This document shows, in pieces, positions 8,924-58,107 of a stretch of 64,000 nucleotides of DNA; within the stretch, counting starts at the first letter, position 1; each line of letters opens with the position of its first letter. This stretch comes from Saccharolobus islandicus REY15A. GTDB lineage: Archaea; Thermoproteota; Thermoprotei_A; Sulfolobales; Sulfolobaceae. The notes under the pieces were generated by a model. That model was not told the DNA's origin. It saw only the letters and a list, made by a program, of their open reading frames with translations, and made no database searches. The stretch lies in the NCBI RefSeq assembly GCF_000189555.1, contig NC_017276.1; one strand, given 5' to 3'. A program made the position numbers and the translations under genes.

Positions 8924-9727
8924 TTGGCAATTAATGTAGGAGACATAGTAGGCATAGTATTTCTAATCATTATAATAATCATCTTTATTGCCATGTCATT
9001 TAGAGTAGTCAGAGAATGGGAGAGAGCCGTTGTGTTGAGATTAGGGAGATTTTTAAGAATAAAAGGCCCTGGAATCATATTCCTTATACCCTTTGTTGAT
9101 AGACCATTAATAGTAGATCTAAGAGTAAATACTGTTGAGGTTCCACCTCAAACTATCTTAACTAGAGATAACGTTACTGTAAGTGTAGACGCTGTAGTGT
9201 ACTATAAAGTGGTTGACCCACAAAAAGCAGTATTAAGTGTTTACAACTATAATGTAGCAGTACTAAATTTAGCTCAAACCTCATTAAGGGATATTGTTGG
9301 ACAAATGGAATTAGATGAGCTATTAAGTAAAAGGGAAGAAATCAATAAGAGGATACAAGAAATATTAGATGTTACAACTGAAGGGTGGGGAATTAAAGTC
9401 ACCGCTGTAACTATAAGAGATATTAGATTATCTCAAGATTTGTTATCTGCTATGGCAAAGCAAGCTGAGGCAGAGAGATTAAGAAGAGCGAAGGTAATAC
9501 TAAGTGAAGGTGAGAGACAAGCTGCAAGTATTTTAGCTGACGCATCTACTTATTACAAGGATAATCCATCAGCATTACAGTTAAGGTTTTTGGAAACATT
9601 ATCAGATATTTCACAAAGAGGAGGTTTAATAATAGTAGTCCCGGCAGGAAATGAAATATACCCTACTCTAGGTACTAGTGCTGCATTATCAACTCTCTCA
9701 AAAAAGTTACAAACTGAAACCAAATAG
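8924..9727 (+). CDS. SPFH/band-7 stomatin-like protein
   Basis: N-terminal TM, VV.RLGR...GPG..FLIPF, TxDNV.V.VDA, AQTSLR..G...LDELL, AEAERxRRA, LQLRFLETL. Confidence 0.95.
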   Translation: MAINVGDIVGIVFLIIIIIIFIAMSFRVVREWERAVVLRLGRFLRIKGPGIIFLIPFVDRPLIVDLRVNTVEVPPQTILTRDNVTVSVDAVVYYKVVDPQKAVLSVYNYNVAVLNLAQTSLRDIVGQMELDELLSKREEINKRIQEILDVTTEGWGIKVTAVTIRDIRLSQDLLSAMAKQAEAERLRRAKVILSEGERQAASILADASTYYKDNPSALQLRFLETLSDISQRGGLIIVVPAGNEIYPTLGTSAALSTLSKKLQTETK

Positions 9728-9775
9728 TCAGCTGGACTAGGAGTCTTCATCCATCATTTACGTCTTTCTCATCAT
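9728..9775 (-). ncRNA. Box C/D guide sRNA candidate overlapping the 3' end of the NurA paralogue
   Basis: C ATGATGA (9775-9769), 11-nt guide GAAAGACGTAA, D' ATGA, C' ATGAAGA, guide CTCCTAGTCCAG, D CTGA (9731-9728). Confidence 0.65.
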
Positions 9776-10849
9776 TAGTTCTGCCAGCTTATCGTTCATA
9801 TCTAAATAGTTTTCTCTAGCTAAGTTAAATAGTAATGCATATTTTTTTGCATCTTGTGAATTTATTTCCGAAAGCTCGTCAGCTAGTTTATTCAATAACG
9901 TAACTTCTCTAATACCTTGCATAGCCCATGTGTTCAAATATTTAATTGGTGTGAAGTCAGGTTCCTTTTCACTCAACATATCTATTCTGACTATTGGTGA
10001 TGTTATATTATACTGGTAATAGAGAGAGTATATTGAGAGTGAGTAGTTAAATGCCTTTTTATATTGGTTATAAGCCTTTGAGATTCCCTTTAGATCATCT
10101 AGTATTATCTGATTATTTATTAACGAATCCCAATTTATCCATCCTAGAAAGATTGGTTTATTAAACTCAGACTTTTCGAGTCTATATTTATACATAATAT
10201 TAGATATTATGTAATTCTCCCTTGCCTTAATCAGCGCCGGATAGCTATTTAAAAATTCCTTGATCAATATTCTATGGGAGAAGTTCTTTACTATTCCCAT
10301 GATTAATTTGTTCTTACTCTTTAATCTTCTGAGTACTGTAGAACGATATAGTGCTAACTTATCCAGCGATAAGATATTTTCTATCTCAACGTCCTCTTCA
10401 TAATATGTGGGAGGATCCACTATAGGTCCATCGATAAATATCACGTCACAATCCTCGCACTTCTCAATTAAACCAGTTTCTAAACTAAGCATAAATAGAA
10501 TGGATTTATTGGATATTACGTTCTTATCATAGTAATTCTCTATTATTTTGAAATCTTCAGCTATCTCAGACGGAACACTCTTTTTATCCTTCTTTTTCCC
10601 TAAGATCTTCACAGCTCTAGCTAGGATAAGAGTTACATCACTTAGCTCTATTTCATATTTACTTCCATCTACTGCACATGCTATGTGGTCAGAATCTATA
10701 ATCTCTTCAAGTATTCCTATTTTTAATTCCGAATTATTTGATGTAATATCGTCAAAAATCAAGTTAGTTGCCATGTTTATCTTTCCTCTCTCATCAACAT
10801 CCTTGGTAGCTAACTCATTTACCTTTTTGATTATCTCATTAATATTCAA
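9758..10849 (-). CDS. NurA-family nuclease paralogue
   Basis: CAVDGS and IFIDGP metal-ligand motifs, VRID, C-terminal LxKLAD helix where canonical NurA has LKAH; last gene of the herA-paralogue operon. Confidence 0.85.
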   Translation of the reverse strand: MNINEIIKKVNELATKDVDERGKINMATNLIFDDITSNNSELKIGILEEIIDSDHIACAVDGSKYEIELSDVTLILARAVKILGKKKDKKSVPSEIAEDFKIIENYYDKNVISNKSILFMLSLETGLIEKCEDCDVIFIDGPIVDPPTYYEEDVEIENILSLDKLALYRSTVLRRLKSKNKLIMGIVKNFSHRILIKEFLNSYPALIKARENYIISNIMYKYRLEKSEFNKPIFLGWINWDSLINNQIILDDLKGISKAYNQYKKAFNYSLSIYSLYYQYNITSPIVRIDMLSEKEPDFTPIKYLNTWAMQGIREVTLLNKLADELSEINSQDAKKYALLFNLARENYLDMNDKLAELMMRKT

Positions 10850-11535
10850 ACTTTCACCTTTATCGAAATATTTCTCTCTACAAGCATTTTCATAACCTTA
10901 ATAGCCTCTTCTAAATTATCTTTACTAATCTTTATTTCGCCTTTGTCTATTAGTATTATCAGTATGTTAATCTCATTCTCGTTTAGATTTAATTTTCCTA
11001 ACTCGTTAACGATAATCTCGTATAGTTCATTAAGGTGTTGTTTAGCTTGTATTTCGACTTCATTTAGCTTAGAAAGTGATTTCTCCTTAGGTATACTAAA
11101 AGTTTTTACATCTTTCTGAATTTTAAGAAAATGATACAAAATTTTCGCATACAATTTTAGTCTATCATTTATTTCCTCGATGTTCTTAATCTTATCGTCT
11201 ATTATCTTATTCAGATCTTGTTCTACATCCTTTTCTAAGCTGTCAATTTTTCCTTTTATCTTCTCTACGTATCTAATTATTTCTTCTGCGGAATTGAGCT
11301 TGCCTAGCCTCTCTATATCTGCTTTAATTTCCTCAAGATTATCTTCATATTTATTTAATTCGTTTATCTTCTTCTCTAAGCTCCTTAATTTCTTTAGAGA
11401 CTCCTTCAAGCTTTGTTTAGATACCTCTAATTCCTCTATCATCTCAGTAATTTTTCTATCTTCTTCTCTAAGTTTTTCTACGTCCAAATTCTGCTTATAT
11501 TGGGTCAATTTTTCTATAAAGTCAGCCAAATCCAT
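10846..11535 (-). CDS. Coiled-coil protein with small C-terminal (winged-helix-like) domain
   Basis: K/E/L/I-rich heptads over about 180 aa; LNENEINILIILIDKGEIKI C-terminus; overlaps both neighbours. Confidence 0.8.
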   Translation of the reverse strand: MDLADFIEKLTQYKQNLDVEKLREEDRKITEMIEELEVSKQSLKESLKKLRSLEKKINELNKYEDNLEEIKADIERLGKLNSAEEIIRYVEKIKGKIDSLEKDVEQDLNKIIDDKIKNIEEINDRLKLYAKILYHFLKIQKDVKTFSIPKEKSLSKLNEVEIQAKQHLNELYEIIVNELGKLNLNENEINILIILIDKGEIKISKDNLEEAIKVMKMLVERNISIKVKV

Positions 11536-14500
11536 GTTCTTCTAGAACCTCCTTTATTTCTTGAATCAATTGCATAATCTTTTGCGTGTTTCTCTCCACG
11601 TTCTCCCTCAACTTAGGTAATTCTGGACTTATCTTTTCTAACTCATTTACAATCGTCTCAATATTATTTAATTGAATACCGACCTTACTTAATGATGTAA
11701 TTTCATCTACTATTGTTCCTTTTAACTCTTCACCAACGATTGCTATGCCATTTAGTGTCTCTTTCAGTAATTTGAATAATATGAAATAAAGATTTGAGTT
11801 GTCCTCAACATGAATTGTAGCAAGTAAGTAATCGAGGTATCTTTTGAAAGACTCCGTTTCTCCCCTTTCATTTATCTCCTGAATTCTTTTCGCCAACTTA
11901 TCCATGTGTATTTTGAAATTGTCTTTAAGTTCTCGAACTATCTCACGTACTTTCTCTATTTCCTCTATTTTCTCGTTTATCTTAACATATCTCTTAGCCT
12001 TTTCCACAACTTCTAATTTCTTAGAGATTTCCTCCACGATCTTGTCCGTTTCAATTACTGATTTCTCGGTCTCTCTTAATAATTCCAGATAAATATTCGA
12101 TAGGTAGAGGTAATCATAACATAGCCTTATATCCTTATTTTCAGTGCAAGATTTCTCATATGTTTCTATGACTTCTCTCATTTCTTCAAGACTCCTTACT
12201 GCAGCTCCCCTCTTTTTAGCAGTTATGAAGTATCCATAAGCTGAGTATGGATTATCTAGTTTTTCCTTTATTTTTCGTATCTGGTCATTTATTTTCATAT
12301 AAATTGAATCTTTATTTAAATGTTTGGCGACTTCACCACTAACTATTGAAGAGTAAACTAGGAAATCTAAAGTGGGATTTTGTCCAATCTTTTTATCAGG
12401 ATTAAAAATTTGGTAAGCGAAGGTTAAAGGATTATTTTTATTATCCTTTCTTCTTGTATCTTGTGGGTTTACATAGTACATGATAGAATTAAATATAACA
12501 TCCTCCGCTTCTTGTTTGTATTTTTGTCTAATAAGTCCCGCAAATAGCTTAGAAAATGAGGACAACGAGTCTCCAGCTAAGTCTTCGAAATCTATGTAAT
12601 TAGCTCTTATCTTTATTATATAATTATTATAGAAGTAAGTAATAACGTCTTCAATAAATGTGTTTGATGTTTCTATATCCTCTAAATGGAATTGCTTACT
12701 TCCATACATTCTGAATTTCTCATTAATGATGTCATTTACTTTGTCGAACACTTCATCAGCATTTGCCATCTTAATTGAAGGGTAAAATATTATCCAATTG
12801 AACGATTGTATTAATCTCTTATTTTTAGGTATTGGGAGTTGTTTCAAATTAAGGTTATCTCTTATTTTTAGCAGTAGAGAGGATATCGAATTTTTCAAGT
12901 CACCTAGTCTTAGTTCTATGGAATCCAGTCTAATTCTACTTTGCCCATAGATCTTAGAGAATAGTAGATATAATAACTGTCTTTTCTTTGGTGTGGTGAT
13001 TTTTAGTTCGATCAAAGGTATTGATAGTTCGTCTAAAGTTTTCGACAATTCTTCCTTTCCTATTTGAGGCTCTATTAGAATAAGTCCGTGAATTATATCA
13101 TCGCTTTCTTTAATCTCTTTTATTAGACTCTTAATTTCATCCTCGTTAGACGGTTTTGCTAAAATAATTGTAATTTTGTCATTTCTCTCGACGACTTTTA
13201 AAAACCTTATGTAGTCTCTGGCTCTGTTAACACTATCTATTTTTATTCCTAGAACCTCCATAAAATATTCTACTGATTCAAGTTCCTTCTCTCTATCTGT
13301 AATATATGTATTTACGAACTGTAAAGCTTTATCTCGTATTTCCCTAGACTTGAACTCTACTACTAGTCCTCCTATATTCGTATTCGCTACGCTCTCAAAG
13401 AAGTTCCAAGATAATGCATAGGCTTCAGTTTTACTGAATAGCGTTAGTTTTTTTATATTCTCCTTTAATTTGCTTGTATCTATACTTTCGTACACTACAC
13501 TTTCTATATTATCAGATATAAATACGTGAAAGTCATCTTGATAGTATGTTAAAAGGAAGTCCTCTACGTATTCTTGTCCTTTAGGGAACATCTCAATCCA
13601 TTTTAGGTATGGTAGCAGTACTCCCTTCACTACATGACCTTCTAATTGTTTTATGATTAGTTTTTCGTCAGTGAATATTCTACTCATTAGCACTCTATAT
13701 AACTTACTTGATTCTTGAGAGTCCAATTCGTTCTCCATTTTCGTCAATGTATCTAGCTTGATGGTCTCCCCTTCTGAATTTAGGCTAATTCCTTTCTCTG
13801 ATCTAGCTAGTTCGTTGAAAATTCTATCTATATTAGGAAGATTATCGCACAATATATCGTTAAAGAACCTTACGTATTTTCTTCTTTCTTGGTCTATTAC
13901 CCAGTACGGCAAATCCATGTATTGGAGTATTTTGAAGTCCTTTACGTTAGCCATATTTAGCATGCATTTTAACATCAATAGAAACTCTAATTTAGATGGA
14001 TTTTCTATACTAACTTTCCTTATTCTTTCTAAGAGTGAAGGGTATGTCTCTGAAAATAGGTTATAAATTAATCCCCCAGTTCCAAATATTTTAGAATATG
14101 CGCTAGGAGTCATGGAAAGATATACTATTGAATTTCCGGTTGAGTTGGCTAATTCCTTTACCTTACTCCAAAAATCCTTTATCTCGCTTTGATATTGTGC
14201 AAAGTAATCTACAGAACTCTCTACCTCATCAATAAGATATACGTTATTTCTGAACGTTAATAAGTCTTCAGTTTTACTTAAAAGTTCTACAAAAGGTACT
14301 TTTATTACGCTAATATTTTTGCTTTTGGCGTATTCCTCAATAATGTCAAGGAATGTGCTTTTTCCTTGACCCCAATCGGCTACAAGGGATATTATTTCTG
14401 GGGACTGTTTAGTATTAGATATCCTGTCTAGCTCATCCTTAACCTGCTTGAAAAATCTTAGTCTATTAATGTATAATGGGTTCTCACTAATGCAAGAGAA

Positions 14501-14560
14501 AATTTGATAGATGTAAGACGAGTCAGAGGCAGTCTCACTTATTCTCTTGTAACAACTCAC
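11522..14560 (-). CDS. Large (1012 aa) P-loop ATPase with C-terminal coiled coil
   Basis: Walker A ADWGQGKST, Walker B VYLIDEVE, LLERI arginine-finger-like motif; helical/coiled-coil C-terminus; family not identified. Confidence 0.85.
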   Translation of the reverse strand: MSCYKRISETASDSSYIYQIFSCISENPLYINRLRFFKQVKDELDRISNTKQSPEIISLVADWGQGKSTFLDIIEEYAKSKNISVIKVPFVELLSKTEDLLTFRNNVYLIDEVESSVDYFAQYQSEIKDFWSKVKELANSTGNSIVYLSMTPSAYSKIFGTGGLIYNLFSETYPSLLERIRKVSIENPSKLEFLLMLKCMLNMANVKDFKILQYMDLPYWVIDQERRKYVRFFNDILCDNLPNIDRIFNELARSEKGISLNSEGETIKLDTLTKMENELDSQESSKLYRVLMSRIFTDEKLIIKQLEGHVVKGVLLPYLKWIEMFPKGQEYVEDFLLTYYQDDFHVFISDNIESVVYESIDTSKLKENIKKLTLFSKTEAYALSWNFFESVANTNIGGLVVEFKSREIRDKALQFVNTYITDREKELESVEYFMEVLGIKIDSVNRARDYIRFLKVVERNDKITIILAKPSNEDEIKSLIKEIKESDDIIHGLILIEPQIGKEELSKTLDELSIPLIELKITTPKKRQLLYLLFSKIYGQSRIRLDSIELRLGDLKNSISSLLLKIRDNLNLKQLPIPKNKRLIQSFNWIIFYPSIKMANADEVFDKVNDIINEKFRMYGSKQFHLEDIETSNTFIEDVITYFYNNYIIKIRANYIDFEDLAGDSLSSFSKLFAGLIRQKYKQEAEDVIFNSIMYYVNPQDTRRKDNKNNPLTFAYQIFNPDKKIGQNPTLDFLVYSSIVSGEVAKHLNKDSIYMKINDQIRKIKEKLDNPYSAYGYFITAKKRGAAVRSLEEMREVIETYEKSCTENKDIRLCYDYLYLSNIYLELLRETEKSVIETDKIVEEISKKLEVVEKAKRYVKINEKIEEIEKVREIVRELKDNFKIHMDKLAKRIQEINERGETESFKRYLDYLLATIHVEDNSNLYFILFKLLKETLNGIAIVGEELKGTIVDEITSLSKVGIQLNNIETIVNELEKISPELPKLRENVERNTQKIMQLIQEIKEVLEEHGFG

Positions 14561-14564
14561 ATTT

Positions 14565-16178
14565 TCACCCTTCGCTTAAAATTAAATCAATTCTTTCCAC
14601 GTTTCCAGCGTATGATCCCAACCTAGCATCCCACGGTATTCTTACCAATGCTGGACTTTTCATTATTGACATAAGCCCACTTACTATTACGTGTCCAGTC
14701 TCTAATGATGTCAAATTCCTAGTCAACGATTCTGGTAAACCTCCAGAAGCAGACATCACATACCTTACATCTTCGTGATATATTCTATGAAAGAAGAAGG
14801 TGTTAATCATCGACAATACGTATTTATCTATAAATGCAGGTCTTTGACTTACGAGAATTAAAGAAGCCCCAAATTTTCTTCCTTGGGTTGCCAATGTTAC
14901 CAATGCGTCTTTTGTCAGGTTGGCGTTTACTGGATAATCAACAGAAGGTATGTAGTTTTGTGCCTCTTCTATTACAAATCCCAAGAACCTTTGATTGCCG
15001 TTATATTTGGATTTTGTGAGATAATTGAAGATCAATCTAGTTATGTAACTCACGATAAGCTGTTTTGTAAGGACGTCTATACCTGGTGAACCCTCAGCAG
15101 AGAAGTCTATTATTCCTAAACCTCTATTCCTCCAAATCACTTCTAGTGTATTTTCAGTTAAAGATGCAGAAGAGTTGACCAGTTGTAGTCTGCTAATCAC
15201 CTTGTTTTTGAATATTTCTAGTGCACTCGCAATTGCTCTAGCCGTGCTTGTTGTTATTCCTATATCTTTATTTTGAGCCATAGTAAGGATCTCATTTCTT
15301 AGGTTCTCAATTCCTATTGCAGTTCCTAGAAGGGTATTGTACTCCTTACTATCGTGATTTGCTAGCACTTGCTCTAGGAAATTTAGTTGCAAGGTGTTAT
15401 AGGAAGCTTCTCCGTATTTTAGAGACATAATGAATTCTGATAATTCTCTAGGAGTGAATATGGACAAATCTATTGTGAGTTTAACGTCATTTTGTTCCTT
15501 AGGATCCTTTAGTATATACCTTTTTATCCAGCCTCTTCCCCTAGATACGATGTCTAGATTTGTCGAAGCTAAATCTATGTAGTCTCCATTCGCATCAATT
15601 ACAATCATCGGTAAGGCTGTGATCTTATCTCCTATTTTTATGTTGGATAGAAGCTTGATTAAATATCTCATATTATAGCTTTTTCCACTCCCTGTCTCCC
15701 CAAAAACTCCTACATGCATCGTTATCGCATTAAGGTCTAATAATAATGGTATTTCAGAACCAGCTAAAACACCGTACTCAATTAATCCTTTCTTGTTTTT
15801 TATACCATAAAACGAAAGTAGGTCTTTTTCACTCTTTATTTCTGGTAGTCTTCTTACGAAAGAACCCGGTTTAGGAGTAGTGCTATGGTCATATTTTTTT
15901 ATTAAGTGTAAAGTAGTCTTTATTATTGTATTCATATCTAGAATCTCGTATATCGATGGTTCTTTTAGTATTGACTTAGCTATATCCCCCCTTTCGTCAA
16001 AAAACTCGTTCAGAAATTCATAATTCTCAACTCTGACTAGCGAAAGTTTCTCAGAATCATCAATTAATAACAATTGCCCTATGTTTATTTCTTCGTCAGC
16101 TCTAATTAGCCCTTGCAATTCATTTGCTTCGCTTTTCTGCAGTACTATTCCTATGATCTCTCCCTTTTCCATCAACAT
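14565..16178 (-). CDS. HerA/FtsK-family ATPase (HerA paralogue)
   Basis: N-terminal HAS-barrel-like region, HVGVFGETGSGKSY, VIDANGDY, VIEEAQNY, QGRKFG, SQRP, L..L..G motifs. Confidence 0.93.
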   Translation of the reverse strand: MLMEKGEIIGIVLQKSEANELQGLIRADEEINIGQLLLIDDSEKLSLVRVENYEFLNEFFDERGDIAKSILKEPSIYEILDMNTIIKTTLHLIKKYDHSTTPKPGSFVRRLPEIKSEKDLLSFYGIKNKKGLIEYGVLAGSEIPLLLDLNAITMHVGVFGETGSGKSYNMRYLIKLLSNIKIGDKITALPMIVIDANGDYIDLASTNLDIVSRGRGWIKRYILKDPKEQNDVKLTIDLSIFTPRELSEFIMSLKYGEASYNTLQLNFLEQVLANHDSKEYNTLLGTAIGIENLRNEILTMAQNKDIGITTSTARAIASALEIFKNKVISRLQLVNSSASLTENTLEVIWRNRGLGIIDFSAEGSPGIDVLTKQLIVSYITRLIFNYLTKSKYNGNQRFLGFVIEEAQNYIPSVDYPVNANLTKDALVTLATQGRKFGASLILVSQRPAFIDKYVLSMINTFFFHRIYHEDVRYVMSASGGLPESLTRNLTSLETGHVIVSGLMSIMKSPALVRIPWDARLGSYAGNVERIDLILSEG

Positions 16179-16222
16179 TTAACATTATTTAAGAACGTTT
16201 TTAAACGATTAAGCTACTGGAA

Positions 16223-16789
16223 TTATGATGAAATGGTTGTTATCACATTAGCTATGGTTTTAAAGGCTAATCTACCATATGGGTAAATTGTTATTTTTAA
16301 ATTTGAGATTTCAGCTGCCCTTTTGACTATTTCGTAGTGATGCCTAGGTAGTATACCTATTAACCTATTGTGTAACGTACTTACTTTTATGAGGGGTTTC
16401 GTTAATAACATTATAAACTCTTCTTTCTCCTCTTTACTCATAAGTCTCGGCGGGTAATCATAATTATTAAAAGGATAGCATTCCTCTAATTCTTTAGGCA
16501 CTAAAAGCATTGGTTCCGATACTGAATAGACTTGCACTTTTTCTTCTAAATTATATTTGTTTAATGTAGAATAGGCTATTTTGTGGGTTGGCGATAATGA
16601 ATAAGGCTTAACTACTGTACAAGGCAATAACAATCCAATTTCCTTGTCCGAATTCCAATTTTCCAGGAAATAGTGATGCCATCTCATTACTACCGGGTGT
16701 TTGAATAAATCATCTGTATTATCTTTTTTAGATATTCTAGTAAAATCAGGCTTTAGATATTCATATAGTCGCTCGCATGCAGAGCTCAT
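16223..16789 (-). CDS. DUF5591-domain protein (archaeosine synthase ArcS-like domain)
   Basis: LLLPCTVVKPYSLSPTH, VSEP..LVP.ELE..YP..NYDYPP pattern characteristic of DUF5591. Confidence 0.8.
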   Translation of the reverse strand: MSSACERLYEYLKPDFTRISKKDNTDDLFKHPVVMRWHHYFLENWNSDKEIGLLLPCTVVKPYSLSPTHKIAYSTLNKYNLEEKVQVYSVSEPMLLVPKELEECYPFNNYDYPPRLMSKEEKEEFIMLLTKPLIKVSTLHNRLIGILPRHHYEIVKRAAEISNLKITIYPYGRLAFKTIANVITTISS

Positions 16790-17645
16790 TTACCTCTTCC
16801 TCTATCTCATCTTCTGGGAAACTATCTAGCTTTTTAGAATACTCTATTAATGGATTGTTAATTTCATATTCTGAATTTAAGAGTACCCAAGCATTAATTA
16901 GACTTCTATCTACCCAATTATCAAGTCTGATTGGAAACATATAGTTTGTCCTATCTAAGAATGATAATAAAGTCTCTAATTCCTCTTCACTAGCTCTCCT
17001 AGTGCCCCAAACTATTTTTCTTTCGCCAACGTATCTTTCTCCTTTGCCTGGTATAATTACCATGCCATGTATTCCCTTGATTCTATAGGTTGAGGTATCT
17101 ACACTATTAGCGTTAAAGTAGACTTTTCTCATGAATGGTGATCCAGCTCCCAATACGTGAATTTTTCCTTTCCATAATTTTCTCACTAGATGATATATTG
17201 TAACTGCGAGTTTTTTGTTTCCACTTTTATTGAGGGTAGGAGGTATAATTCCACCGAATGCCACTAGATCAGTATATTGGGAGTAGAAGTCTATGGACTT
17301 CTTTATTGATTCTACATCATAAGCGTGTATAACTGGTACTATTTTCTTATCAAAAACCGCGTACAGATACTCGAAGTATTTGTAATTTAATTCTGAAGGT
17401 TTATGACAAGGGTTTGACGGTATATCGAGGCTCATGTATTGTGTAGCATCTAAAATTTTATATTTCTCAACAACTTTTTCTATTTCAACCTTTATCCCTT
17501 TTACCATTATTTGATATCCTCCAGAGTCTACCCATGTCTCATTTTCCCAGGATAGATTATTCCAGTTTAATTGGTTAACCATTAATGGTTGTTTAAACAT
17601 CCAAACTGGGATTTTCAAGTCAGGTATACCTAGTATTATCTTCAT
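16761..17645 (-). CDS. tRNA-guanine transglycosylase (TGT)/DpdA-like base-exchange enzyme
   Basis: VDSGGYQ (D40), SLDIP (D74), PVIH, AFGG, IHVLGAG and SVDTS motifs of the TGT barrel; no CxCxxC Zn site and no PUA domain. Confidence 0.85.
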   Translation of the reverse strand: MKIILGIPDLKIPVWMFKQPLMVNQLNWNNLSWENETWVDSGGYQIMVKGIKVEIEKVVEKYKILDATQYMSLDIPSNPCHKPSELNYKYFEYLYAVFDKKIVPVIHAYDVESIKKSIDFYSQYTDLVAFGGIIPPTLNKSGNKKLAVTIYHLVRKLWKGKIHVLGAGSPFMRKVYFNANSVDTSTYRIKGIHGMVIIPGKGERYVGERKIVWGTRRASEEELETLLSFLDRTNYMFPIRLDNWVDRSLINAWVLLNSEYEINNPLIEYSKKLDSFPEDEIEEEVNELCMRATI

Positions 17646-17762
17646 TTTTCCTGGTATTGGTATTACTATCGGGTTATAACTTCATTTATAATAATACCTT
17701 ATTAGGGAGTTTATTTCCCTACATTTTAGTTAACGAAAATATCACATTTATATTATAGTATA

Positions 17763-39780: not shown

Positions 39781-40614
39781 TATTCCTCTTTCCTCACTTA
39801 TCTTAAAGAAGAACTCTAATCCTCTTCTTACCTCATCAACTGGAACATTGTACTCTTGTATATCAGCCCAGATCGTCTTTCTTACTATCTCTTCATCAAG
39901 GTCCGCTTTTTGCGATTCTCTCATTATTTGAACATCTCTTGGTATTATTTCATCTAAGTGTTTCTCTGCATATTTCTTACTTTTCTCGTAGGTCTCTTTA
40001 AATTTAAGTGCAAAGTCCTTTCCAACTTCTTTAGAAATTACCACCATGCCCATTGGCATTGGTGTATTATTTGAAATAGCTTTCCACATATCCCACATGC
40101 TACCTATTCTAACTACATTAATTCCCAACTTCTTTAGAGCGTACATCATCTTTATTTCATGAACTGCCACTAACACATCTCCCTCCTTTCCCAGGGCTTT
40201 TATTTCGTCCAATACTCTTCTAATTATAACTAACCTTCCATATTTTCCCATAAGTAGCTTATATAATGTAAACGCGGTAGTGTTCGGTCCATGAACTATT
40301 AGCCTGCTTCTCTTTATTTCGTTCTCACTCATTTCTTTTATTGCTAAAATTGGCATACCAGTTATACCATCCACTGCAGTTGCCACAGCATTACTTAGAA
40401 TGTAATAGTCATCCTGTATGTATGGATACATTGCAGCAGATGGAACTGAAACATCCACCTCTTTCTTTAATACCGCTTCATTGATATCTTGAACAGTAGG
40501 TATTACTTCAAACTCTAAGTTGAAGCCTTCTGGTCTAACTTTTCCCTCCATTAATGGTATAAAAGGATAAAGGTCTCCAGAATCTGCAAGTGCCCCTACT
40601 CTTATTGTTACCAT
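39748..40614 (-). CDS. MqnA/MqnD/SBP-family protein
   Basis: DSGD.Y.F..L, D.Q..N.A, TTA..L, HE....Y, P.P.G motifs of the MqnD-like periplasmic-binding fold. Confidence 0.8.
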   Translation of the reverse strand: MVTIRVGALADSGDLYPFIPLMEGKVRPEGFNLEFEVIPTVQDINEAVLKKEVDVSVPSAAMYPYIQDDYYILSNAVATAVDGITGMPILAIKEMSENEIKRSRLIVHGPNTTAFTLYKLLMGKYGRLVIIRRVLDEIKALGKEGDVLVAVHEIKMMYALKKLGINVVRIGSMWDMWKAISNNTPMPMGMVVISKEVGKDFALKFKETYEKSKKYAEKHLDEIIPRDVQIMRESQKADLDEEIVRKTIWADIQEYNVPVDEVRRGLEFFFKISEERGILPRVKSIDLL

Positions 40615-48129: not shown

Positions 48130-49053
48130 ATGAGGAAGGTCGTATTAGATTCAGATACAGCTAGCGATGATACTATAGCCATATTGCTTGCGTCTAGATA
48201 TTTCCAATTATTAGGTGTAACAATAGTTGCTGGAAATGTAAATTATAATCAAGAGGTTAAGAATGCACTTTTCACTTTAGAGTACATTGGTAAGCAAGAC
48301 GTACCAGTTTATTTAGGATCACAAAGACCTATTTTGGGAAATTGGAGAACAGTTGAGGAAGTCCATGGAAGTAACGGAATGAGTGATTGGGACTATCCCG
48401 AACCTACTAAAAGGCCAGAGAAAGAGCATGCAATAGATGCTATACTCAGATTGTCGAAAGAATACGACGGGGAATTGGAAATACTTGCAGTTTCCCCTTT
48501 AACAAATATTGCTTTGGCTTATCTTAAAGATCCGTCAGTTGTCAAGCGAATAAGAAAGATTTGGATAATGGGTGGTGCTTTTTCAAAGGGTAATACTACC
48601 CCTATAGGGGAGTTCAATTTCTGGGTAGATCCCGAGGCTGCTAAAATAGTTTTAGATGCAGGATTTGATATTACCGTCGTTCCTTGGGAAGTCGCTGAAA
48701 CAAGTGGTTCTTTAAACGAGAGAGATTGGGAATTTATCTCCAAACTCAATACTAAGCTCTCAAAATTCTTTATTAATGTCAATAAGACATTAAAGGAATA
48801 TACTACTAAGAATCAAGGTATATCTGGTAGTACTCATCCAGATTCCTTAACAGTTTCTATAGCCTATGATAGATCTATTATCTCAGAGTCTTCTCTAAAG
48901 TATATTGATTTAGAATTATGTTCAAAGTCAAGAGGAGCAATGTTAATAGACTGGTACAGTTTACATAAAAATAAGCCTAATGCTGAAATTGTATTAAAGG
49001 CAGATAGTAACAAGTTCAAAAATCTTCTATTCAGAACCCTTTCCGAGTTTTGA
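48130..49053 (+). CDS. Inosine-uridine-preferring nucleoside hydrolase
   Basis: [36 protein letters not shown]. Confidence 0.95.
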
Positions 49054-50939: not shown

Positions 50940-51758
50940 GTGCAAAGAACTTTTATATTGACGTTGTTTACGTCCCTTAGTTTTATTATAGCTTACTATA
51001 TTTCCCTTAGTCCATTAATTTTAGCAGAATTTTCTCACGCCTTAATTGACTTCTTAACAATTACATTTTCAATTATCGCCCTAAAATTTATAGGGGAGAA
51101 TGAAGTAAGTGAGGGGAGGCTTTCTTATGGATTACATAGACTGGAAGTTATTGTTGCTATGATTAATATCTTTGCTATTATCCTCCTTTCACTTATTGTA
51201 GCATATACCTCCATAACGTCATTGTTAAAAGAGACTACTAACAGTTCTTTTGCTTTGATTATCTCGTCAGCCCTAGCATCAATTCTAACTTTCTTTGCAT
51301 CTCCTAAAGAAAAGGACAACTTGGGTAAGAGGGGATTATATGTGCATATAATATCAGACTTTCTAGGATATATAATCGGCTTTGTTATAGGTATTCTTAT
51401 CCTTATTTCCGGAATACATGAATTGGATCCCGTAGGAGCAATTATACTTGTAATACTAAATTTTGCACTTGCAATCCCATTATTAAAGGAATCTTTTTTA
51501 ATATTTATGGAAGGTTCTCCAGTGAAAATTGATAATATCATGGGAGAACTTACAAAAATTTCTCCAGATATTCATCATTTACATGTGTGGTCAATTTGTG
51601 ATCATGTAAAGGTAGCAACACTTCACGTTAAAGCATCTCCAAATCTGACTATAGCTGAGGCGGATAAGATAAGGGGTTCAATCTGTAGTCTGCTTAGAGA
51701 AAAATATGGCATTTCTCATGTAACGGTTCAGTTTGAGACGACGAATGATGACGATTAA
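50940..51758 (+). CDS. Cation diffusion facilitator, ZitB/CzcD-type
   Basis: AE..H.L.D, SYG.HR.EV, H...D.LG, HHLHVWSI, H.TVQ.E. Confidence 0.92.
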   Translation: MQRTFILTLFTSLSFIIAYYISLSPLILAEFSHALIDFLTITFSIIALKFIGENEVSEGRLSYGLHRLEVIVAMINIFAIILLSLIVAYTSITSLLKETTNSSFALIISSALASILTFFASPKEKDNLGKRGLYVHIISDFLGYIIGFVIGILILISGIHELDPVGAIILVILNFALAIPLLKESFLIFMEGSPVKIDNIMGELTKISPDIHHLHVWSICDHVKVATLHVKASPNLTIAEADKIRGSICSLLREKYGISHVTVQFETTNDDD

Positions 51759-52774
51759 TAAAACTGGCTGGGCCACCACTCAATATCTTTGTGAAGTTTA
51801 CTTCCCATTAACTTTATTATTTTTTCCCTATCCATCCTTGAAAATCTAACGTCTATATGAGCTTTTAAGAGTGGAAATGGATATCCCTTAATGCTTACTC
51901 CACTCAAATGATCCATTATCTCCTTTACTATTTTCTCATCCACTCTTCCAACCATATCTATTCTAACAACCCTCTTACCATTATCCAATCTAGTATAGAA
52001 AGTTGTATATTCCATTTTTCTTAATATCTCAAGCTCGGGTATCTCAGAAATTTTTCTGATGTCTATATTTTTGATTATAAGTTTTGAAAATCCTCTTTTT
52101 TCAGTAAACAGTTCAAAAACAGTTATGTCGGGATAGTCTGTACCAAATAAATCTCTCCCCCTACTGGTTTTAGATATCCATAAAACCTTGCCATCATATT
52201 GCTCTATTATTCTACTAACGAGAAATTGATTTAGTAGCATTAGCAAATCCCTCATTTTCCTTTCATCTTTTATGCTAATAATACTATTTATGTCGACATT
52301 CTTAACTAGCTTTAGCTCTTCATCAGAGATTTGTTGAATATCGACTTTATTACCAATCTTTTTGTTTAAACTTCCATCCATAAGAATGTAATCTCCTTTA
52401 CTACCATCCCTTAAAGCTAGTGATAATTCCAATGCCTCCATTAATAGTGATATTCTTTCTTGTGCATCGTTCCCTGGCTTGAATATACCTATTTGACCAT
52501 CCTCGCTCAATGTCTTTACTCCTTTATTATCTCCGATTACGGATTCAGCTCCTACAGCATAAACTATCCCTATTCTCATAGGTTTACTGAAAGAACCACC
52601 ATCAATAGCTACAAATTTGCATATTTCGCTTAACTCATTATCTCTAGTGTATTCAGTCCAAAACTCATTAACCTTTTCTTGTATTTCTTGCCTAAGGTAG
52701 CTAGCAATATTGTAAATCTGATTTTTTATCTCGTTGTGACTTTCCGCTAACTTATCATATATTTTTCTTATCAA
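51755..52774 (-). CDS. nurA: 5'-3' nuclease NurA
   Basis: AIDGG, LMDGS, YPFPLLKAH; last gene of herA-mre11-rad50-nurA. Confidence 0.95.
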   Translation of the reverse strand: MIRKIYDKLAESHNEIKNQIYNIASYLRQEIQEKVNEFWTEYTRDNELSEICKFVAIDGGSFSKPMRIGIVYAVGAESVIGDNKGVKTLSEDGQIGIFKPGNDAQERISLLMEALELSLALRDGSKGDYILMDGSLNKKIGNKVDIQQISDEELKLVKNVDINSIISIKDERKMRDLLMLLNQFLVSRIIEQYDGKVLWISKTSRGRDLFGTDYPDITVFELFTEKRGFSKLIIKNIDIRKISEIPELEILRKMEYTTFYTRLDNGKRVVRIDMVGRVDEKIVKEIMDHLSGVSIKGYPFPLLKAHIDVRFSRMDREKIIKLMGSKLHKDIEWWPSQFY

Positions 52775-55365
52775 GTCTCCTCCCTCACAAAACTTTTATT
52801 TCCTCTCTTTTCAACACGAATAACATAATCAGCTGCCTGGACTACCTCCTCGTCATGTGTTACCACTAATATCTGAGGTACACTTTCCTTTGCTGCCCTA
52901 ATTATCTCTATTAAGTACGCTTTTCTTTGATCATCTAAATGAATTGTTGGCTCGTCAAGAATGAAGAAGTTAGTATTACTCATCAGTGCCTTAGCTATTG
53001 CTAACCTTAAAGCTATAGATAAGGCAATTCTCTCACCTCCACTAAGCGATACTATGGGCAAAGTATCGCCGTTATTAGTGTATATTACTATATTCCCACC
53101 ACTGCCCTTTCCTCTACTAGTTTTTGGCATTATCTCCATTTCTACGTTTTTAATAGATAGATCAAATTTCGATATTATATCATTTAGATTATTTTCAATT
53201 AATTGTTTTGTTGCCATGATTATATAACTCTGTAATTTTCGTTCTCCTAATGCATCTCTAATTTTCTCCAGCTTATTAATACCATTGATTATCTTTTCTT
53301 TATCTTTTAGTTGCAATTCATAATTCTTAATTCGATTACTTATTTCCTCTATGTCTTTACCTAAACTATCCAATTCGCCCTCCACTCTACTTTTTCTGTT
53401 TTCCTTCTCCTTAAGACTGGCATTATGGACATCTAAACTCGTTTTAAGTTCATTATATTTATTTTCATCAAACTGTATGATATTTAATTTTTCCCTTAGT
53501 TTCTTAACATCTTCTTGTAGTAGCTCAACTTGTCCTATATAGTCTTCTAGTACTCCTCTTTTCTTCTTCATTTCATCCAAGATTTTTTTCTTCCTCTCTA
53601 AATCTGAAATTTTATTCTCCAGCTCTTTACGGTCTAACCCTTGTAATTCGGTTTCTAGAGCCCTCATTTCTTTTTCGATTTCTACTTTTTTCTTCTTCAT
53701 TTCATCTAACCTATTTTTTCTTCTTTCAAGTTCCTTCTCGTCATACTTAAATAGTCTCATAAACTCTTCATAATACTGTTTTAGGTCCTTTATTTCTACA
53801 TTTATTTTCTTAATTTCCTCCTCTATATCCTTTAAAGCTTCAATCCTATTATGAAGATTCTCTATTTCCTCGTTTAACTTTCTAAGTTGTTTTATTACAT
53901 TATCGTAATTTGCCTTATTATTTGAGAGTTTTCTATATTCTTTTTCAATTTTATTTAATTCATCAGTGGTTTTCTTTAATTCTTCTTCCAGTTCATTCTT
54001 ATCTAATTCTAATCGTGAAATGTAACTTTTTGCTTCTTCTACTATTTTTTGTTTGTGTTCCTCATCTAGGGGTCTTCCACATACCGGACAAGTTTCCCCC
54101 TTAACTTGACTAAGATTATTTATTATCTCATTTTTCTCAGATATTAGGCTTTCAACTTTACCTAATTGAGCTCGAAGATCAAGTTGTCTTTTTCTTTTCT
54201 CTTCCATAATTTGTTCAAGATTACTAATTCTATCTATATCTTTAGAAAACTCACTTGCGTCTTTCTCTAAACGTTCTTTTAAATTTAGTTTGGAGTCTAA
54301 ATTGGATTTCGATTTGAGATATTCTTCATGTTTTGGCTGTAATTCTTCTAGTTTTCTCTCCAATTCCTTGTATCTTAGATAATGTGGCTCAAGTTCTTTC
54401 TTTCTTTTAATAGCTTTTTCATATTCCTCAATTTCCTTTTCTAAATTAAGTATATTATTGGATATCTCTATATAACTTCTCGATAAAACTTCATATTTTT
54501 CAAATTTTAATCTAAAATTCTTTAAATTGTCAAGTTCGTTTACCTCCTTTTCAAGCTTATCCATGTTTTCCGTTTGTCTTCTTAGTTCTTCTATACTCTT
54601 GTTTAATTCATTTAATTTAGTTTCTTTTACCTTTAAGATAGTGGTCAACTCTAAGTACTGATTTCTTTTCTTCTCATAATCTTCGAATTGTTTCTTTAAC
54701 TCAGTTATTTGATTTTCCAAGTTCTTTATCTCATCCTCCAGTTTTTTCCTATCTTTTTCTAACTCCAACACTCTATTTCTCTTCTCCTCCAAGTTCTTCT
54801 TAGAATCATTATAGTCTTGTTCTATCCTGTCTAACTCTCTTAACTTGTTTTCCAAATTCTTCTTAAATTCCACTATTGGACCTCTGCTATCAATAAGCTT
54901 CTCGATTGATTCCAACTTTAGAATTTTCCCCATAATGTCTTGTAAATTCTCCAAAATTTTATCCAATTCTCCTTGTCTAACTATTATTGTTGATAGGGCA
55001 ATATCTTTATCAATACCCAGAATTTTCTCTATTTCATTAGAGACTACCGTTGCACTACGTGCAACTGGTATTTGATTCCGTATTAACCTATCTTCTGTAG
55101 TGCTTCTTATATCCCTTATTATTTCTATTTTATCTTTTTCATTAGAAAGATGTAAGGTAACGCTCGCCTTATTTGAGCCTTTTCTTATTAAGTTGTCGTT
55201 ATTTCCTCTACTATGGGTTCTAAACAAACTGAATACTATGCCATCTATTATAGAACTCTTACCTGCTCCATTTTGTCCCACTATTACATTTATTTCGCCT
55301 AGAAAGTGTATTTCACTGTGTTCATGACTTAAAAAATTAGTCAAAGTAATTTTGTCAATTCTCAT
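52771..55365 (-). CDS. rad50: DNA double-strand break repair ATPase Rad50
   Basis: GQNGAGKSS, CPVCGR zinc hook, LSGGE, ILDEPT, THD. Confidence 0.97.
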   Translation of the reverse strand: MRIDKITLTNFLSHEHSEIHFLGEINVIVGQNGAGKSSIIDGIVFSLFRTHSRGNNDNLIRKGSNKASVTLHLSNEKDKIEIIRDIRSTTEDRLIRNQIPVARSATVVSNEIEKILGIDKDIALSTIIVRQGELDKILENLQDIMGKILKLESIEKLIDSRGPIVEFKKNLENKLRELDRIEQDYNDSKKNLEEKRNRVLELEKDRKKLEDEIKNLENQITELKKQFEDYEKKRNQYLELTTILKVKETKLNELNKSIEELRRQTENMDKLEKEVNELDNLKNFRLKFEKYEVLSRSYIEISNNILNLEKEIEEYEKAIKRKKELEPHYLRYKELERKLEELQPKHEEYLKSKSNLDSKLNLKERLEKDASEFSKDIDRISNLEQIMEEKRKRQLDLRAQLGKVESLISEKNEIINNLSQVKGETCPVCGRPLDEEHKQKIVEEAKSYISRLELDKNELEEELKKTTDELNKIEKEYRKLSNNKANYDNVIKQLRKLNEEIENLHNRIEALKDIEEEIKKINVEIKDLKQYYEEFMRLFKYDEKELERRKNRLDEMKKKKVEIEKEMRALETELQGLDRKELENKISDLERKKKILDEMKKKRGVLEDYIGQVELLQEDVKKLREKLNIIQFDENKYNELKTSLDVHNASLKEKENRKSRVEGELDSLGKDIEEISNRIKNYELQLKDKEKIINGINKLEKIRDALGERKLQSYIIMATKQLIENNLNDIISKFDLSIKNVEMEIMPKTSRGKGSGGNIVIYTNNGDTLPIVSLSGGERIALSIALRLAIAKALMSNTNFFILDEPTIHLDDQRKAYLIEIIRAAKESVPQILVVTHDEEVVQAADYVIRVEKRGNKSFVREET

Positions 55366-58012: not shown

Positions 58013-58107
58013 GTATAGATAAAATACTATTGGCTTCCTAAAATGGCTTACTCATTGTAGAAGAGTAATACCTAGAAATGGGAAAAATTTAAAAAGCAAA
58101 AATAGCT

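Follow-up and report, generated by a model that had tools for sequence, protein, structure and literature searches.

The 64,000-nucleotide stretch of the Saccharolobus islandicus REY15A genome analyzed here (the window) contains a cluster of six minus-strand genes, numbered g1 to g6 in order of transcription, that probably constitutes a two-module system resembling restriction-modification and based on 7-deazaguanine base exchange. The genes encode, in order, a TGT-like transglycosylase, the archaeosine synthase core ArcS2, the translocase paralogue HerA2, a large P-loop ATPase, a short coiled-coil protein, and the nuclease paralogue NurA2. An earlier reading of this DNA (the first-pass annotation) had proposed that a modifier encoded by the first two genes marks self nucleic acid and that a HerA2-NurA2 machine degrades what is unmarked. 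The list of open reading frames gives exactly the six minus-strand genes that it described, and our recomputed junctions (-29, +44, +4, -14, and -4 bp) agree with its spacings. The self-marking idea is strengthened by a homologous viral gene pair, recurrent linkage of the modules, their co-occurrence in genomes, and a split between essential and non-essential genes in published transposon data; two of its premises, a single operon and an assured supply of preQ0, were not supported.

The gene content, the catalytic motifs, the architecture of two units, the homology to the viral pair, and the recurrent association of the modules are direct observations. The division into essential and dispensable genes and the repression of g1 and g2 by the regulator aCcr1 come from published data sets. 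We infer that DNA is the substrate, which base is made, that g3-g6 cause the essentiality of g1 and g2, and how the mark is read.

In the system that we propose, the DpdA-like transglycosylase g1 would replace guanines in self DNA with a 7-deazaguanine precursor, and the ArcS2 core encoded by g2 would convert the inserted base at its 7-substituent. The pair would be expressed from its own promoter under the cell-cycle repressor aCcr1. HerA2, a hexameric ATP-driven DNA translocase, and the nuclease NurA2 would form the degrading engine; the candidates, chosen by exclusion, to load or license this engine on unmarked DNA are g4 (AAA+) and g5 (coiled coil). Without the modifier, the chromosome would lose its protection and the cell would die; without the machine, the cell would be unharmed. 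Sulfolobus viruses, for their part, would have taken over the modifier to pass as self, as the pair in STSV1, STSV2, and STSV4 and as a g1-like gene alone in rudiviruses.

A predicted guanine transglycosylase and its ArcS2 partner

g1 (16761-17645, minus strand; 294 amino acids; orthologues SiRe_0019, M164_0019, and SSO2202) is predicted to encode a minimal, DpdA-like guanine transglycosylase of the TGT superfamily. The protein has no match in Pfam. A profile of the g1 family matches ArcTGT (1iq8, E=2e-5) and DpdA (7ui4, E=8e-4), and an AlphaFold2 (AF2) model (predicted local distance difference test [pLDDT] score 90) describes a bare 294-residue TIM barrel of the TGT type. The top Foldseek matches of this model (query TM-score [TMq] 0.42-0.58) are 1iq8, bacterial and human TGT, 7ui4, and Cap10 (9ntn). 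Four residues are invariant in 15 relatives: D40 (within DSGGYQ), D74 (LDIP), H107, and D183 (SVDTS; SxDTS in the family). D40, D74, and D183 align to D95, D130, and D249 of ArcTGT and, by homology, would act as general acid/base, base-binding residue, and nucleophile, respectively. H107 aligns to a DpdA histidine, apparently the base-reading His181 after correction for the expression tag; ArcTGT has Gln at this position.

The structural zinc motif CxCxxC...H, described as conserved in TGTs and DpdA, is absent from g1, which contains only two cysteines (C80 and C289). Our family-model scan detected no PUA, C-terminal, or other tRNA-binding domain, leaving the core domain only. g1 scores 19 bits against the TgtA family model (cut-off 350) and has no match in PADLOC at E<=0.1, DpdA models included. 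Together, the family cut-offs, the missing zinc site, and the lack of a PADLOC match rule out g1 as a canonical ArcTGT or as a member of the bacterial DpdA family.

The similarity to Cap10 bears on a different reading of the cluster, in which g1 and g2 attach a 7-deazaguanine derivative to a protein, as in type IV cyclic oligonucleotide-based antiphage signaling systems (CBASS), and so restrain or prime HerA2-g4-g5-NurA2 in the manner of an antitoxin or regulator. The TGT-fold enzyme Cap10 conjugates deazaguanine to a CD-NTase (bioRxiv 10.1101/2025.04.06.647259), the g1 model matches its structure significantly (9ntn, TMq 0.51-0.53), and a protein target would equally predict essential g1 and g2 with dispensable g3-g6. 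However, Cap10 ranks below ArcTGT, bacterial TGT, and DpdA as a match to the g1 model, and neither a CD-NTase gene nor a gene for the QueC-like partner Cap9 is present in or beside the cluster. Moreover, viruses, one of them with modified DNA, carry g1, with or without g2, in the absence of g3-g6. We consider a protein target improbable.

g2 (16223-16789, minus strand; 188 amino acids; orthologues SiRe_0018, M164_0018, and SSO2201), which overlaps g1 by 29 bp, is predicted to encode ArcS2, a stand-alone C1 core of archaeosine synthase. It matches Pfam DUF5591 (E=6e-18) and positions 254-409 of NCBIfam ArcS (E=9e-20). The score of 70.7 bits against the ArcS family model is far from the cut-off of 440, with only the core domain present; the C2 domain, PUA, and other tRNA-binding domains are absent. 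The C1 motif of ArcS, PC-x3-KPY-x2-S-x2-H (PMC10516641), is complete at P56-H69 (PCTVVKPYSLSPTH). Compared with ArcTGT (TgtA) and ArcS, then, g1 retains the TGT fold and catalytic residues and g2 the C1 catalytic core, whereas both proteins lie under the equivalog cut-offs and the zinc site, C2 domain, and PUA domains are missing.

Bacterial Dpd systems, which consist of DpdA/B/C and DpdD-K (PMC10164549), offer a parallel in logic. Dpd relies on a TGT-fold enzyme to replace G with a 7-deazaguanine, on a second enzyme to convert the base, and on adjoining ATPase and nuclease genes to restrict; here, the same steps are predicted from the genes. The catalytic Asp pair and, as far as the alignment indicates, the base-reading His are common to DpdA and g1. 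In contrast, g1 has 294 residues compared to about 410 in DpdA and lacks the Ins8/Zn region, and none of the five neighboring proteins is a homologue of DpdB (an ATPase resembling ParB), DpdC, or DpdD-K. The second enzyme is ArcS2 rather than DpdC, and the predicted effector is HerA-NurA together with a family (g4) that has no relatives by hidden Markov model (HMM) search.

The closest annotated relatives of g1 and g2 are viral. STSV1, STSV2, and STSV4 encode a similar pair in the identical overlapping order, with 67% identity to g1 and 60-63% identity to g2. For STSV2, the identities are 67% (STSV2_15 versus g1) and 63% (STSV2_16 versus g2) over 97-99% of the length. The STSV1 and STSV2 pairs (PMC6884629, PMC10516641) also resemble g1 and g2 in size, have an intact C1 motif, and fall with cellular Sulfolobales in our tree. 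They differ in context, as the viral pair stands alone, without HerA, NurA, g4, or g5, and is read as anti-restriction, while the pair described here is chromosomal, essential, regulated with the cell cycle, and located beside a nuclease machine.

The STSV2 proteins have been named DpdA and ArcS2, and 7-carboxy-7-deazaguanine (dCDG) was detected in STSV2 virion DNA at 0.04% of G; DpdA2 and ArcS of phage nt-1 make dG+ in plasmid DNA (PMC10516641). Cui et al. (2023) found neither the source of STSV2's base nor the reason for its genes and reported no host pathway; the host, S. tengchongensis, was said to have no Q/G+ genes (PMC10516641). In contrast to this statement, a S. tengchongensis genome encodes a g1 orthologue, V6M85_05415 (80% identity), and a g4 orthologue, V6M85_05430. 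In our tree, STSV2 groups with cellular sequences from Saccharolobus and Aramenus with moderate support (89/90; ultrafast bootstrap 89), and the approximately unbiased test does not reject monophyly of the cellular sequences (p=0.08). The placement of the viral gene inside the cellular clade is thus suggestive only.

Rudiviruses (SIRV1-11 and others) encode a g1-like gene alone (32-40% identity). In SIRV2, this gene adjoins a permease-like gene, and an anti-CRISPR gene lies three genes away. The permease-like gene is directly upstream of the g1-like gene (L052 1293-2492; SIRV2 gp14). Genes for ATP-binding cassette (ABC) transporters (ATPase, BPD_transp_1 permease) also occur near the TGT-like gene in eight loci, three orders (L002, L027, L031, L032, L034, L035, L036, and L038; clusters c6/c45/c39). 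Possibly, transporters beside TGT-like genes function in salvage of a 7-deazaguanine base, which would bear on where STSV2 obtains its base. Sulfolobus rudivirus sequence was also present in assemblies of Streptomyces gamaensis, Planomonospora alba, Paenochrobactrum glaciei, and Nocardioides koreensis (L017, L019, L044, and L045), with L019 99.8% identical to SIRV3 over 13.9 kb. These contigs are almost certainly cross-contamination of culture-collection sequencing runs, which accounts for the NCBI name 'MULTISPECIES ... [Bacteria]' for P0058.

The HerA2-NurA2 module

g3 (14565-16178, minus strand; 537 amino acids; orthologue SiRe_0017) encodes HerA2, a paralogue of FtsK/HerA-type hexameric translocases. 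It matches DUF87/HerA (E=1e-36) and the HerA structure 4d2i (E=7e-21) and contains Walker A (GETGSGKS, residues 160-167) and Walker B (VIEEA, residues 402-406) motifs. g6 (9758-10849, minus strand; 363 amino acids; arCOG07312; orthologue SiRe_0014) encodes NurA2, a paralogue of the RNase-H-fold 5'-3' nuclease NurA (Pfam NurA, E=2.6e-16). In an alignment of NurA2, other TGT-linked NurAs, and canonical NurA, D61 and D140 of the acidic triad are invariant and E124 is nearly so. As the first-pass annotation had noted, the window also holds the canonical counterparts of these genes roughly 40 kb away, in a herA-mre11-rad50-nurA operon that we located at 51755-58012. HerA2 is 25% identical to this canonical HerA; NurA2 and the canonical NurA of the window have no BLAST-level similarity.

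Between HerA2 and NurA2 lie g4 and g5. g4 (11522-14560, minus strand; 1012 amino acids; arCOG07313; orthologue SiRe_0016) has an N-terminal AAA+/KAP-like P-loop domain. Its only Pfam match is a weak one to the KAP P-loop (E=8e-5), and no PDB, PADLOC, or NCBIfam family was found. The Walker A (DWGQGKS, residues 62-68) and Walker B (LIDE, residues 109-112) motifs are invariant. In the AF2 model (pLDDT 85), the N-terminal domain alone matches AAA+ structures (Rix7, RFC, DnaA/Hda; TMq <=0.17), while the large C-terminal part is without a recognizable relative and ends in coiled coils. When we searched 1.84 billion representative proteins with a g4 profile, we recovered 16 relatives, all members of the g4 family. 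Although g4 was annotated as SMC/Rad50-like (PMC5587795), its fold is AAA+ and its Walker A and Walker B motifs are ~45 residues apart, and it is therefore not of the SMC/Rad50 type. We also rejected a BrxC-like assignment, since g4 has no PADLOC, PDB, or Pfam relative beyond the weak KAP match and the profile search recovered only its own family.

g5 (10846-11535, minus strand; arCOG08073; orthologue SiRe_0015) encodes a 229-residue coiled-coil protein with only coiled-coil-type and weak helix-turn-helix matches (E about 0.01). Its small C-terminal domain is conserved, with the block 'GEIKINKxN...LIEKGI' in 12 homologues. In every locus where g5 is detected, its place is between g4 and g6, and the overlaps range from -1 to -26 bp.

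Like the canonical HerA-Mre11-Rad50-NurA operon, the module begins with herA, ends with nurA, and has two genes between them, and both sets conserve the Walker motifs and the NurA acidic triad. Unlike the canonical operon, it has the AAA+ protein g4 and the short coiled-coil protein g5 in place of Mre11 and Rad50.

Recruitment of a HerA/FtsK translocase beside a DNA-modification module is also seen in DndFGH phosphorothioate systems and in HerA/FtsK 'capture' systems (PMC10853773); there are no Dnd components in the cluster. BRC, a BREX-related system described in 2026 that is present in some archaea, combines HerA/FtsK with PglZ, DUF6079 (BrxC-like), DUF4007, and a STAND NTPase, and in some cases with a GNAT protein and a TGT homologue (PMC12839542). 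As Pfam and PADLOC searches found no PglZ, DUF6079/BrxC-like, DUF4007, STAND, or GNAT protein here, the shared components are HerA and the TGT homologue only. Neither PMC10853773 nor PMC12839542 mentions NurA or ArcS2. The first-pass annotation knew of no characterized system with this exact composition, and in the literature that we searched there was likewise no description of SSO2197-2202 as a system or of a system containing TGT, ArcS2, HerA, and NurA. To judge from these comparisons, the combination of TGT-like protein, ArcS2, HerA2, g4, g5, and NurA2 is one not described before; its predicted logic is that of Dpd and of HerA-containing DndFGH systems, and it is a member of neither.

Transcription units and genetic requirements

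The first-pass annotation had read the six genes as one operon. In 12 loci containing all six genes, g1 and g2 overlap in every case (-29 to -53 bp) and g3-g6 are packed in every case (-26 to +11 bp). The g2/g3 junction is the sole gap that is always positive, measuring 43-205 bp, 1.7 kb, or 3.5 kb (Conexivisphaera) where the two halves are not unlinked altogether. The 1.7-kb gap, in a Saccharolobus-like locus, holds an IS110 transposase fragment and a 150-residue HPP-family membrane gene between ArcS2 and herA2 (L054 4686-6382), and in S. caldissimus a 143-residue HPP-like gene occupies the same spacer (L068 11010-11441). Thus, the ArcS2/herA2 junction tolerates insertions.

Each half is preceded by its own candidate promoter elements on the minus strand. 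The g1-g2 promoter region (17659-17698) contains an aCcr1-box-like motif, AGTAATACC (17659-17667), an upstream motif, GGTATTAT (17691-17698), and a TATA-like sequence, TTATAAAT, the last two within ~17684-17698. These boxes agree with the aCcr1 box described previously (PMC9976878). Paired GTATTAC(C)-type boxes are found upstream of g1 orthologues in 7 of 9 aligned regions, Aramenus and Stygiolobus included, and also at loci without the HerA module. For g3-g6, a TATA-like box, TTTAAAAA (16198-16205), sits within the 44 bp that separate g2 from g3, ~23 nt ahead of the ATG of herA2, and may serve as an internal promoter. An A/T-rich box at a similar distance precedes most herA2 orthologues; an aCcr1-box-like motif precedes none of them, even where herA2 is unlinked from g1 and g2. 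A sigma-70 promoter scan is uninformative for an archaeon.

The motif AGTAWTACC occurs five times in the window, compared to 1.4 expected. The four further exact sites are at 58064-58072 (plus strand) and at 9493-9501, 40499-40507, and 48589-48597 (minus strand). One of these four is located upstream of canonical herA, ~50 nt from its start (58012, minus strand).

Published expression data agree with this division. sire_0018 and sire_0019 form one operon that is repressed ~7-fold (log2 -2.8 and -2.9) when aCcr1 is overexpressed; they are among 17 genes repressed in all, and SiRe_0014-0017 are not (PMC9976878). Overexpression of csa3a raises SiRe_0014 and SiRe_0016 (PMC5587795). This response and the position of the rudiviral g1 homologue near an anti-CRISPR gene place members of both modules in an immune context. 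Based on the junction statistics, the promoter motifs, and the published aCcr1 regulon, which together rule out a single operon, the cluster is best described as two tightly coupled units, g1-g2 and g3-g6, each with its own predicted promoter region. The first-pass annotation had held that separate transcription of the two sets would refute a joint system. Transcription does appear to be separate in part, in two units; this does not validly refute a joint system, since it is common for modification and restriction genes to be driven by promoters of their own.

The two units also differ in their genetic requirements. In transposon insertion sequencing (Tn-seq) of S. islandicus M.16.4, genes were called essential at a log2 fold change (log2FC) <= -5.1 and an essentiality index (EI) <4 (PMC6249222). 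M164_0019 (g1; log2FC -8.53, P 4.8e-6, EI 1) and M164_0018 (g2; log2FC -5.70, P 0.0034, EI 0) are both essential (PMC6249222). The remaining four genes are non-essential: M164_0017 (HerA2; log2FC +1.57, EI 24), M164_0016 (g4; log2FC -0.08, EI 17), M164_0015 (g5; log2FC -0.40, EI 9), and M164_0014 (NurA2; log2FC +0.40, EI 19) (PMC6249222). Since these downstream genes are dispensable, polarity is not the cause of g1/g2 lethality. M164_0014-0019 are not discussed in the main text of that study, which notes that some of its 'essential' genes are antitoxins whose loss is lethal (PMC6249222). In the orthologue table of the same paper, S. acidocaldarius has no entry for any of the six genes, and the sole entry under M. 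sedula is a best hit to the HerA gene (PMC6249222). That g1 and g2 are indispensable in S. islandicus, yet have no tabled orthologue in these two species, suggests that their essentiality is conditional.

Essential g1 and g2 with dispensable g3-g6 is the pattern expected if g1 and g2 protect the cell from g3-g6 and, by analogy, is the genetic signature of restriction-modification. The first-pass annotation had suggested asking whether deletion of the modifier is lethal unless the machine is also deleted; the published Tn-seq, which consists of single-gene data, comes close to this experiment, with an essential modifier and a non-essential machine.

The same data bear on an alternative raised by the first-pass annotation, that the cluster represents a second route for DNA repair or end resection: the transglycosylase would recognize or exchange guanines that are damaged, and resection would fall to HerA2-NurA2. 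Such a pathway fits the parallel with the canonical herA-mre11-rad50-nurA operon and the resemblance of the TIM-barrel TGT/DpdA fold to Endo IV-type repair enzymes (PMC10164549). However, canonical nurA is in the essential set (PMC6249222), while its paralogue NurA2 and the rest of the machine are dispensable and the transglycosylase pair is essential, a pattern that a repair pathway does not predict. The patchy distribution of the genes and their capture by viruses also argue against repair, and the ArcS2 and QueF-like partners of TGT-like genes (see below) indicate 7-deazaguanine chemistry rather than lesion removal. We regard a repair pathway as highly improbable.

Recurrence of the modules in archaeal genomes

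Our survey of TGT-like genes, a scan with the g1 family that covered one genome per species, yielded 48 loci. Using HMMs built from the surveyed proteins and a distance of 9 kb, we found HerA and/or NurA near the TGT-like gene in 17 of the 48, in about eight arrangements across Thermoproteota. With a few HerA paralogues per ~2000 genes, chance adjacency would be expected, as a rough estimate, at about 1% per lineage. The neighborhood survey that the first-pass annotation had called for thus shows TGT-like genes recurring beside HerA and NurA in different orders.

All six genes occur in identical order in at least 13 further Sulfolobaceae loci, and the arrangement is therefore not due to chance. 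These loci include L002-L005, six from a g4-seeded metagenome scan (L053-L056, L060, and L061), S. caldissimus, A. brierleyi, and Sulfuracidifex tepidarius. In Saccharolobus, S. tengchongensis, Acidianus, and Sulfuracidifex, the six-gene order is found at one syntenic site.

Elsewhere the order varies. In Conexivisphaera it is ArcS2>TGT>two genes>HerA2 (37% identity)>g4-like>NurA2 (35% identity). A Desulfurococcales contig (L027) has TGT>ArcS2>NurA>HerA>1478-residue P-loop ATPase; this ATPase is not supported as a g4 orthologue (hhalign not significant, probability 13%), and the locus is therefore analogous and not demonstrably of the g4 family. Other arrangements are NurA>ABC-type ATPase>x>helicase>ArcS2>TGT (L048), ArcS2>TGT>NurA in Stygiolobus (L007), TGT><HerA-like<coiled coil (L006), TGT...<HerA<NurA in Thermoproteus (L035), HerA>TGT in Thermoproteaceae, and TGT><HerA in Caldivirga. 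The HerAs adjacent to TGT-like genes do not form one clade, as HerA2 grouped only with sequences from Sulfolobales, L008, and L027, and those of Thermoproteaceae and Caldivirga fell in another HerA clade. In Njordarchaeota (Asgard), L029 and L046 contain pairs of TGT-like and ArcS2 genes with HerA-like genes nearby. L008 (NZ_JBAMME010000175.1), from a planctomycete bin labeled as a 'Thermogutta sp.' metagenome-assembled genome (MAG), has ArcS2>TGT>HerA2>g4-like and is sister to the Conexivisphaera sequences. As its g4-like protein shares a 90%-identity cluster with Conexivisphaera proteins, L008 is probably a misbinned archaeal contig.

In Thermoproteaceae, the gene after the TGT-like gene is not ArcS2 but a 110-residue QueF-like gene (PF14489, E=4e-11; L031 3161-3493 and L036 10923-11255). 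QueF-like is a tRNA archaeosine (G+) synthase family, the other known G+-forming family. The presence of QueF-like in the place of ArcS2 ties the TGT-like family to 7-deazaguanine chemistry, and to judge from gene order these two alternative G+-forming families are interchangeable partners of the TGT-like proteins.

The g4 family is confined to Sulfolobaceae, Conexivisphaera-like contigs, and one partial Bathyarchaeia fragment, and g4 lies inside a HerA2-g4-g5-NurA2 block in every locus long enough to show it. g1/g2 and g3-g6 are both present and unlinked in Sulfurisphaera tokodaii, S. ohwakuensis, S. javensis, strain S-194, Ca. Aramenus, and strain RB850M. In S. tokodaii, for example, the g3-g6 block is ST0762-0765 and g1/g2 are ST1683-1684. 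In Ca. Aramenus, g1/g2 are at the ancestral site and the g3-g6 block keeps its downstream methyltransferase neighbor. As the block stands apart from g1 and g2 in several genomes, the modules are separable. Stygiolobus azoricus and strain RB850M have a divergent g4 module; in S. azoricus, a second, 649-residue HerA/FtsK-like gene is convergent to the HerA-g4-x-NurA block (L071 15051-17000). g1 was present, linked or unlinked, in all named genomes and MAGs with g4 that were checked for it, with S. azoricus left out of this small, phylogenetically clustered sample. In the same small and phylogenetically non-independent sample, we found no genome with the g3-g6 machine known to lack the modifier.

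Separability lends weight to another explanation, in which the two halves are independent neighbors. g1 and g2 would then be an essential modification pathway for tRNA or another RNA, of a split and non-canonical archaeosine type, and g3-g6 an unrelated, dispensable set of HerA-NurA paralogues for repair, CRISPR adaptation, or stand-alone defense. Databases annotate g1 as 'queuine/archaeosine tRNA-ribosyltransferase', the known substrate of the ArcS C1 domain is preQ0-tRNA, and the QueF-like gene that follows the Thermoproteaceae TGT-like gene belongs to a tRNA G+ synthase family. The two halves also have separate promoters and regulation, and the Csa3a response is confined to SiRe_0014 and SiRe_0016, with SiRe_0018/0019 not listed (PMC5587795).

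Several results argue against independent neighbors. Both proteins are without PUA or other tRNA-binding domains and score far under the TgtA and ArcS cut-offs. If g1 and g2 were essential housekeeping enzymes of tRNA, their absence from S. acidocaldarius and M. sedula would be unexpected, and the ArcS orthologue of M. maripaludis is non-essential. The closest relatives of g1 and g2 are viral, and one such virus has modified DNA. Adjacency to HerA/NurA recurs in varied orders and in distant lineages, and in the genomes compared the modules are jointly present or absent. We therefore judge two unrelated functions unlikely and prefer the two-module restriction-modification-like system.

Several points weigh against this preferred system. 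g1 lacks the zinc site and insertions said to be conserved in bacterial DpdA and has no PADLOC match, and Foldseek places it about equally near tRNA TGTs and DpdA. g4 and g5 show no recognizable reader or nuclease domain. HerA-NurA acts from DNA ends, so the opening of an intact circular target would need explaining. The modules differ in promoters and regulators; they are unlinked in Sulfurisphaera and Aramenus, and the S. azoricus machine has no g1 nearby. A large Ignisphaera clade of TGT-like relatives has no HerA/NurA, ArcS2, or QueF-like gene nearby, and inherited synteny could account for much of the adjacency seen in Sulfolobaceae. The Tn-seq 'essential' call is a statistical one on two short genes. 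STSV2 carries 7-deazaguanine on just 0.04% of its G (PMC10516641), and no measurement has reported 7-deazaguanine in any Sulfolobales chromosome.

The supply of the base is a further difficulty. The first-pass annotation stated that Sulfolobales make preQ0 for archaeosine. Among the ~30 window proteins that we scanned, none was a preQ0 pathway gene. In the Tn-seq data (M164_0225 and M164_1506), a QueD/PTPS homologue is essential (log2FC -5.9, EI 1), unlike in the other organisms of the comparison, where it is non-essential, and a QueE-like radical SAM gene is non-essential (PMC6249222). These calls bear on a possible conditional essentiality of 7-deazaguanine synthesis, but the QueD/PTPS homologue may serve pterin synthesis instead. 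With the QueE-like gene dispensable and neither QueC nor canonical Tgt among the Tn-seq table rows listed, these data do not support an assured supply of the base.

We also offer, tentatively, a more specific version of the two-module system, in which the mark would be a once-per-cell-cycle 'licence' on the chromosome. It would be written by g1 and g2 under aCcr1 and read by a g4/g5 sensor that otherwise unleashes the HerA-NurA shredder, thus policing both invaders and newly replicated self DNA, and viruses would have stolen the writer to counterfeit the licence. If so, this would be the first cellular archaeal 7-deazaguanine DNA modification and the first HerA-NurA restriction effector, and it would link the archaeal cell cycle to discrimination between self and non-self.

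More generally, if the two-module system is real, 7-deazaguanine DNA modification would extend from bacteria and viruses to archaeal chromosomes. Two genes that are essential but undiscussed in the S. islandicus essential-genome study would acquire a function, and a set of HerA-NurA paralogues and the orphan families arCOG07313 and arCOG08073 would acquire a role in defense. There would also be a reason why Sulfolobus viruses carry DpdA-like genes, a question left open by Cui et al. (2023) (PMC10516641). Because the host is non-pathogenic, genetically tractable, and has cultivable viruses, these predictions are directly testable in a model archaeon.

The surroundings of the cluster are those of an ordinary chromosomal region. 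The cluster corresponds to M164_0014-0019, SiRe_0014-0019, and SSO2197-2202, and gene order and lengths in the window agree with S. islandicus M.16.4 from M164_0002 to M164_0024 at a constant offset of 156 nt. The cluster proteins belong to 90%-identity clusters of S. islandicus and S. shibatae. Flanking genes are housekeeping genes (thermopsin, Band 7, DUF255 thioredoxin, SDR, TenA, and Orc1/Cdc6) and the base composition is flat, and there is therefore no sign of a mobile element. These features, and the syntenic position of the site across genera, rule out an integrated virus or a defense island. The Orc1/Cdc6 initiator gene is at 686-1873, placing the cluster ~8-17 kb from a replication-initiator gene and origin region.

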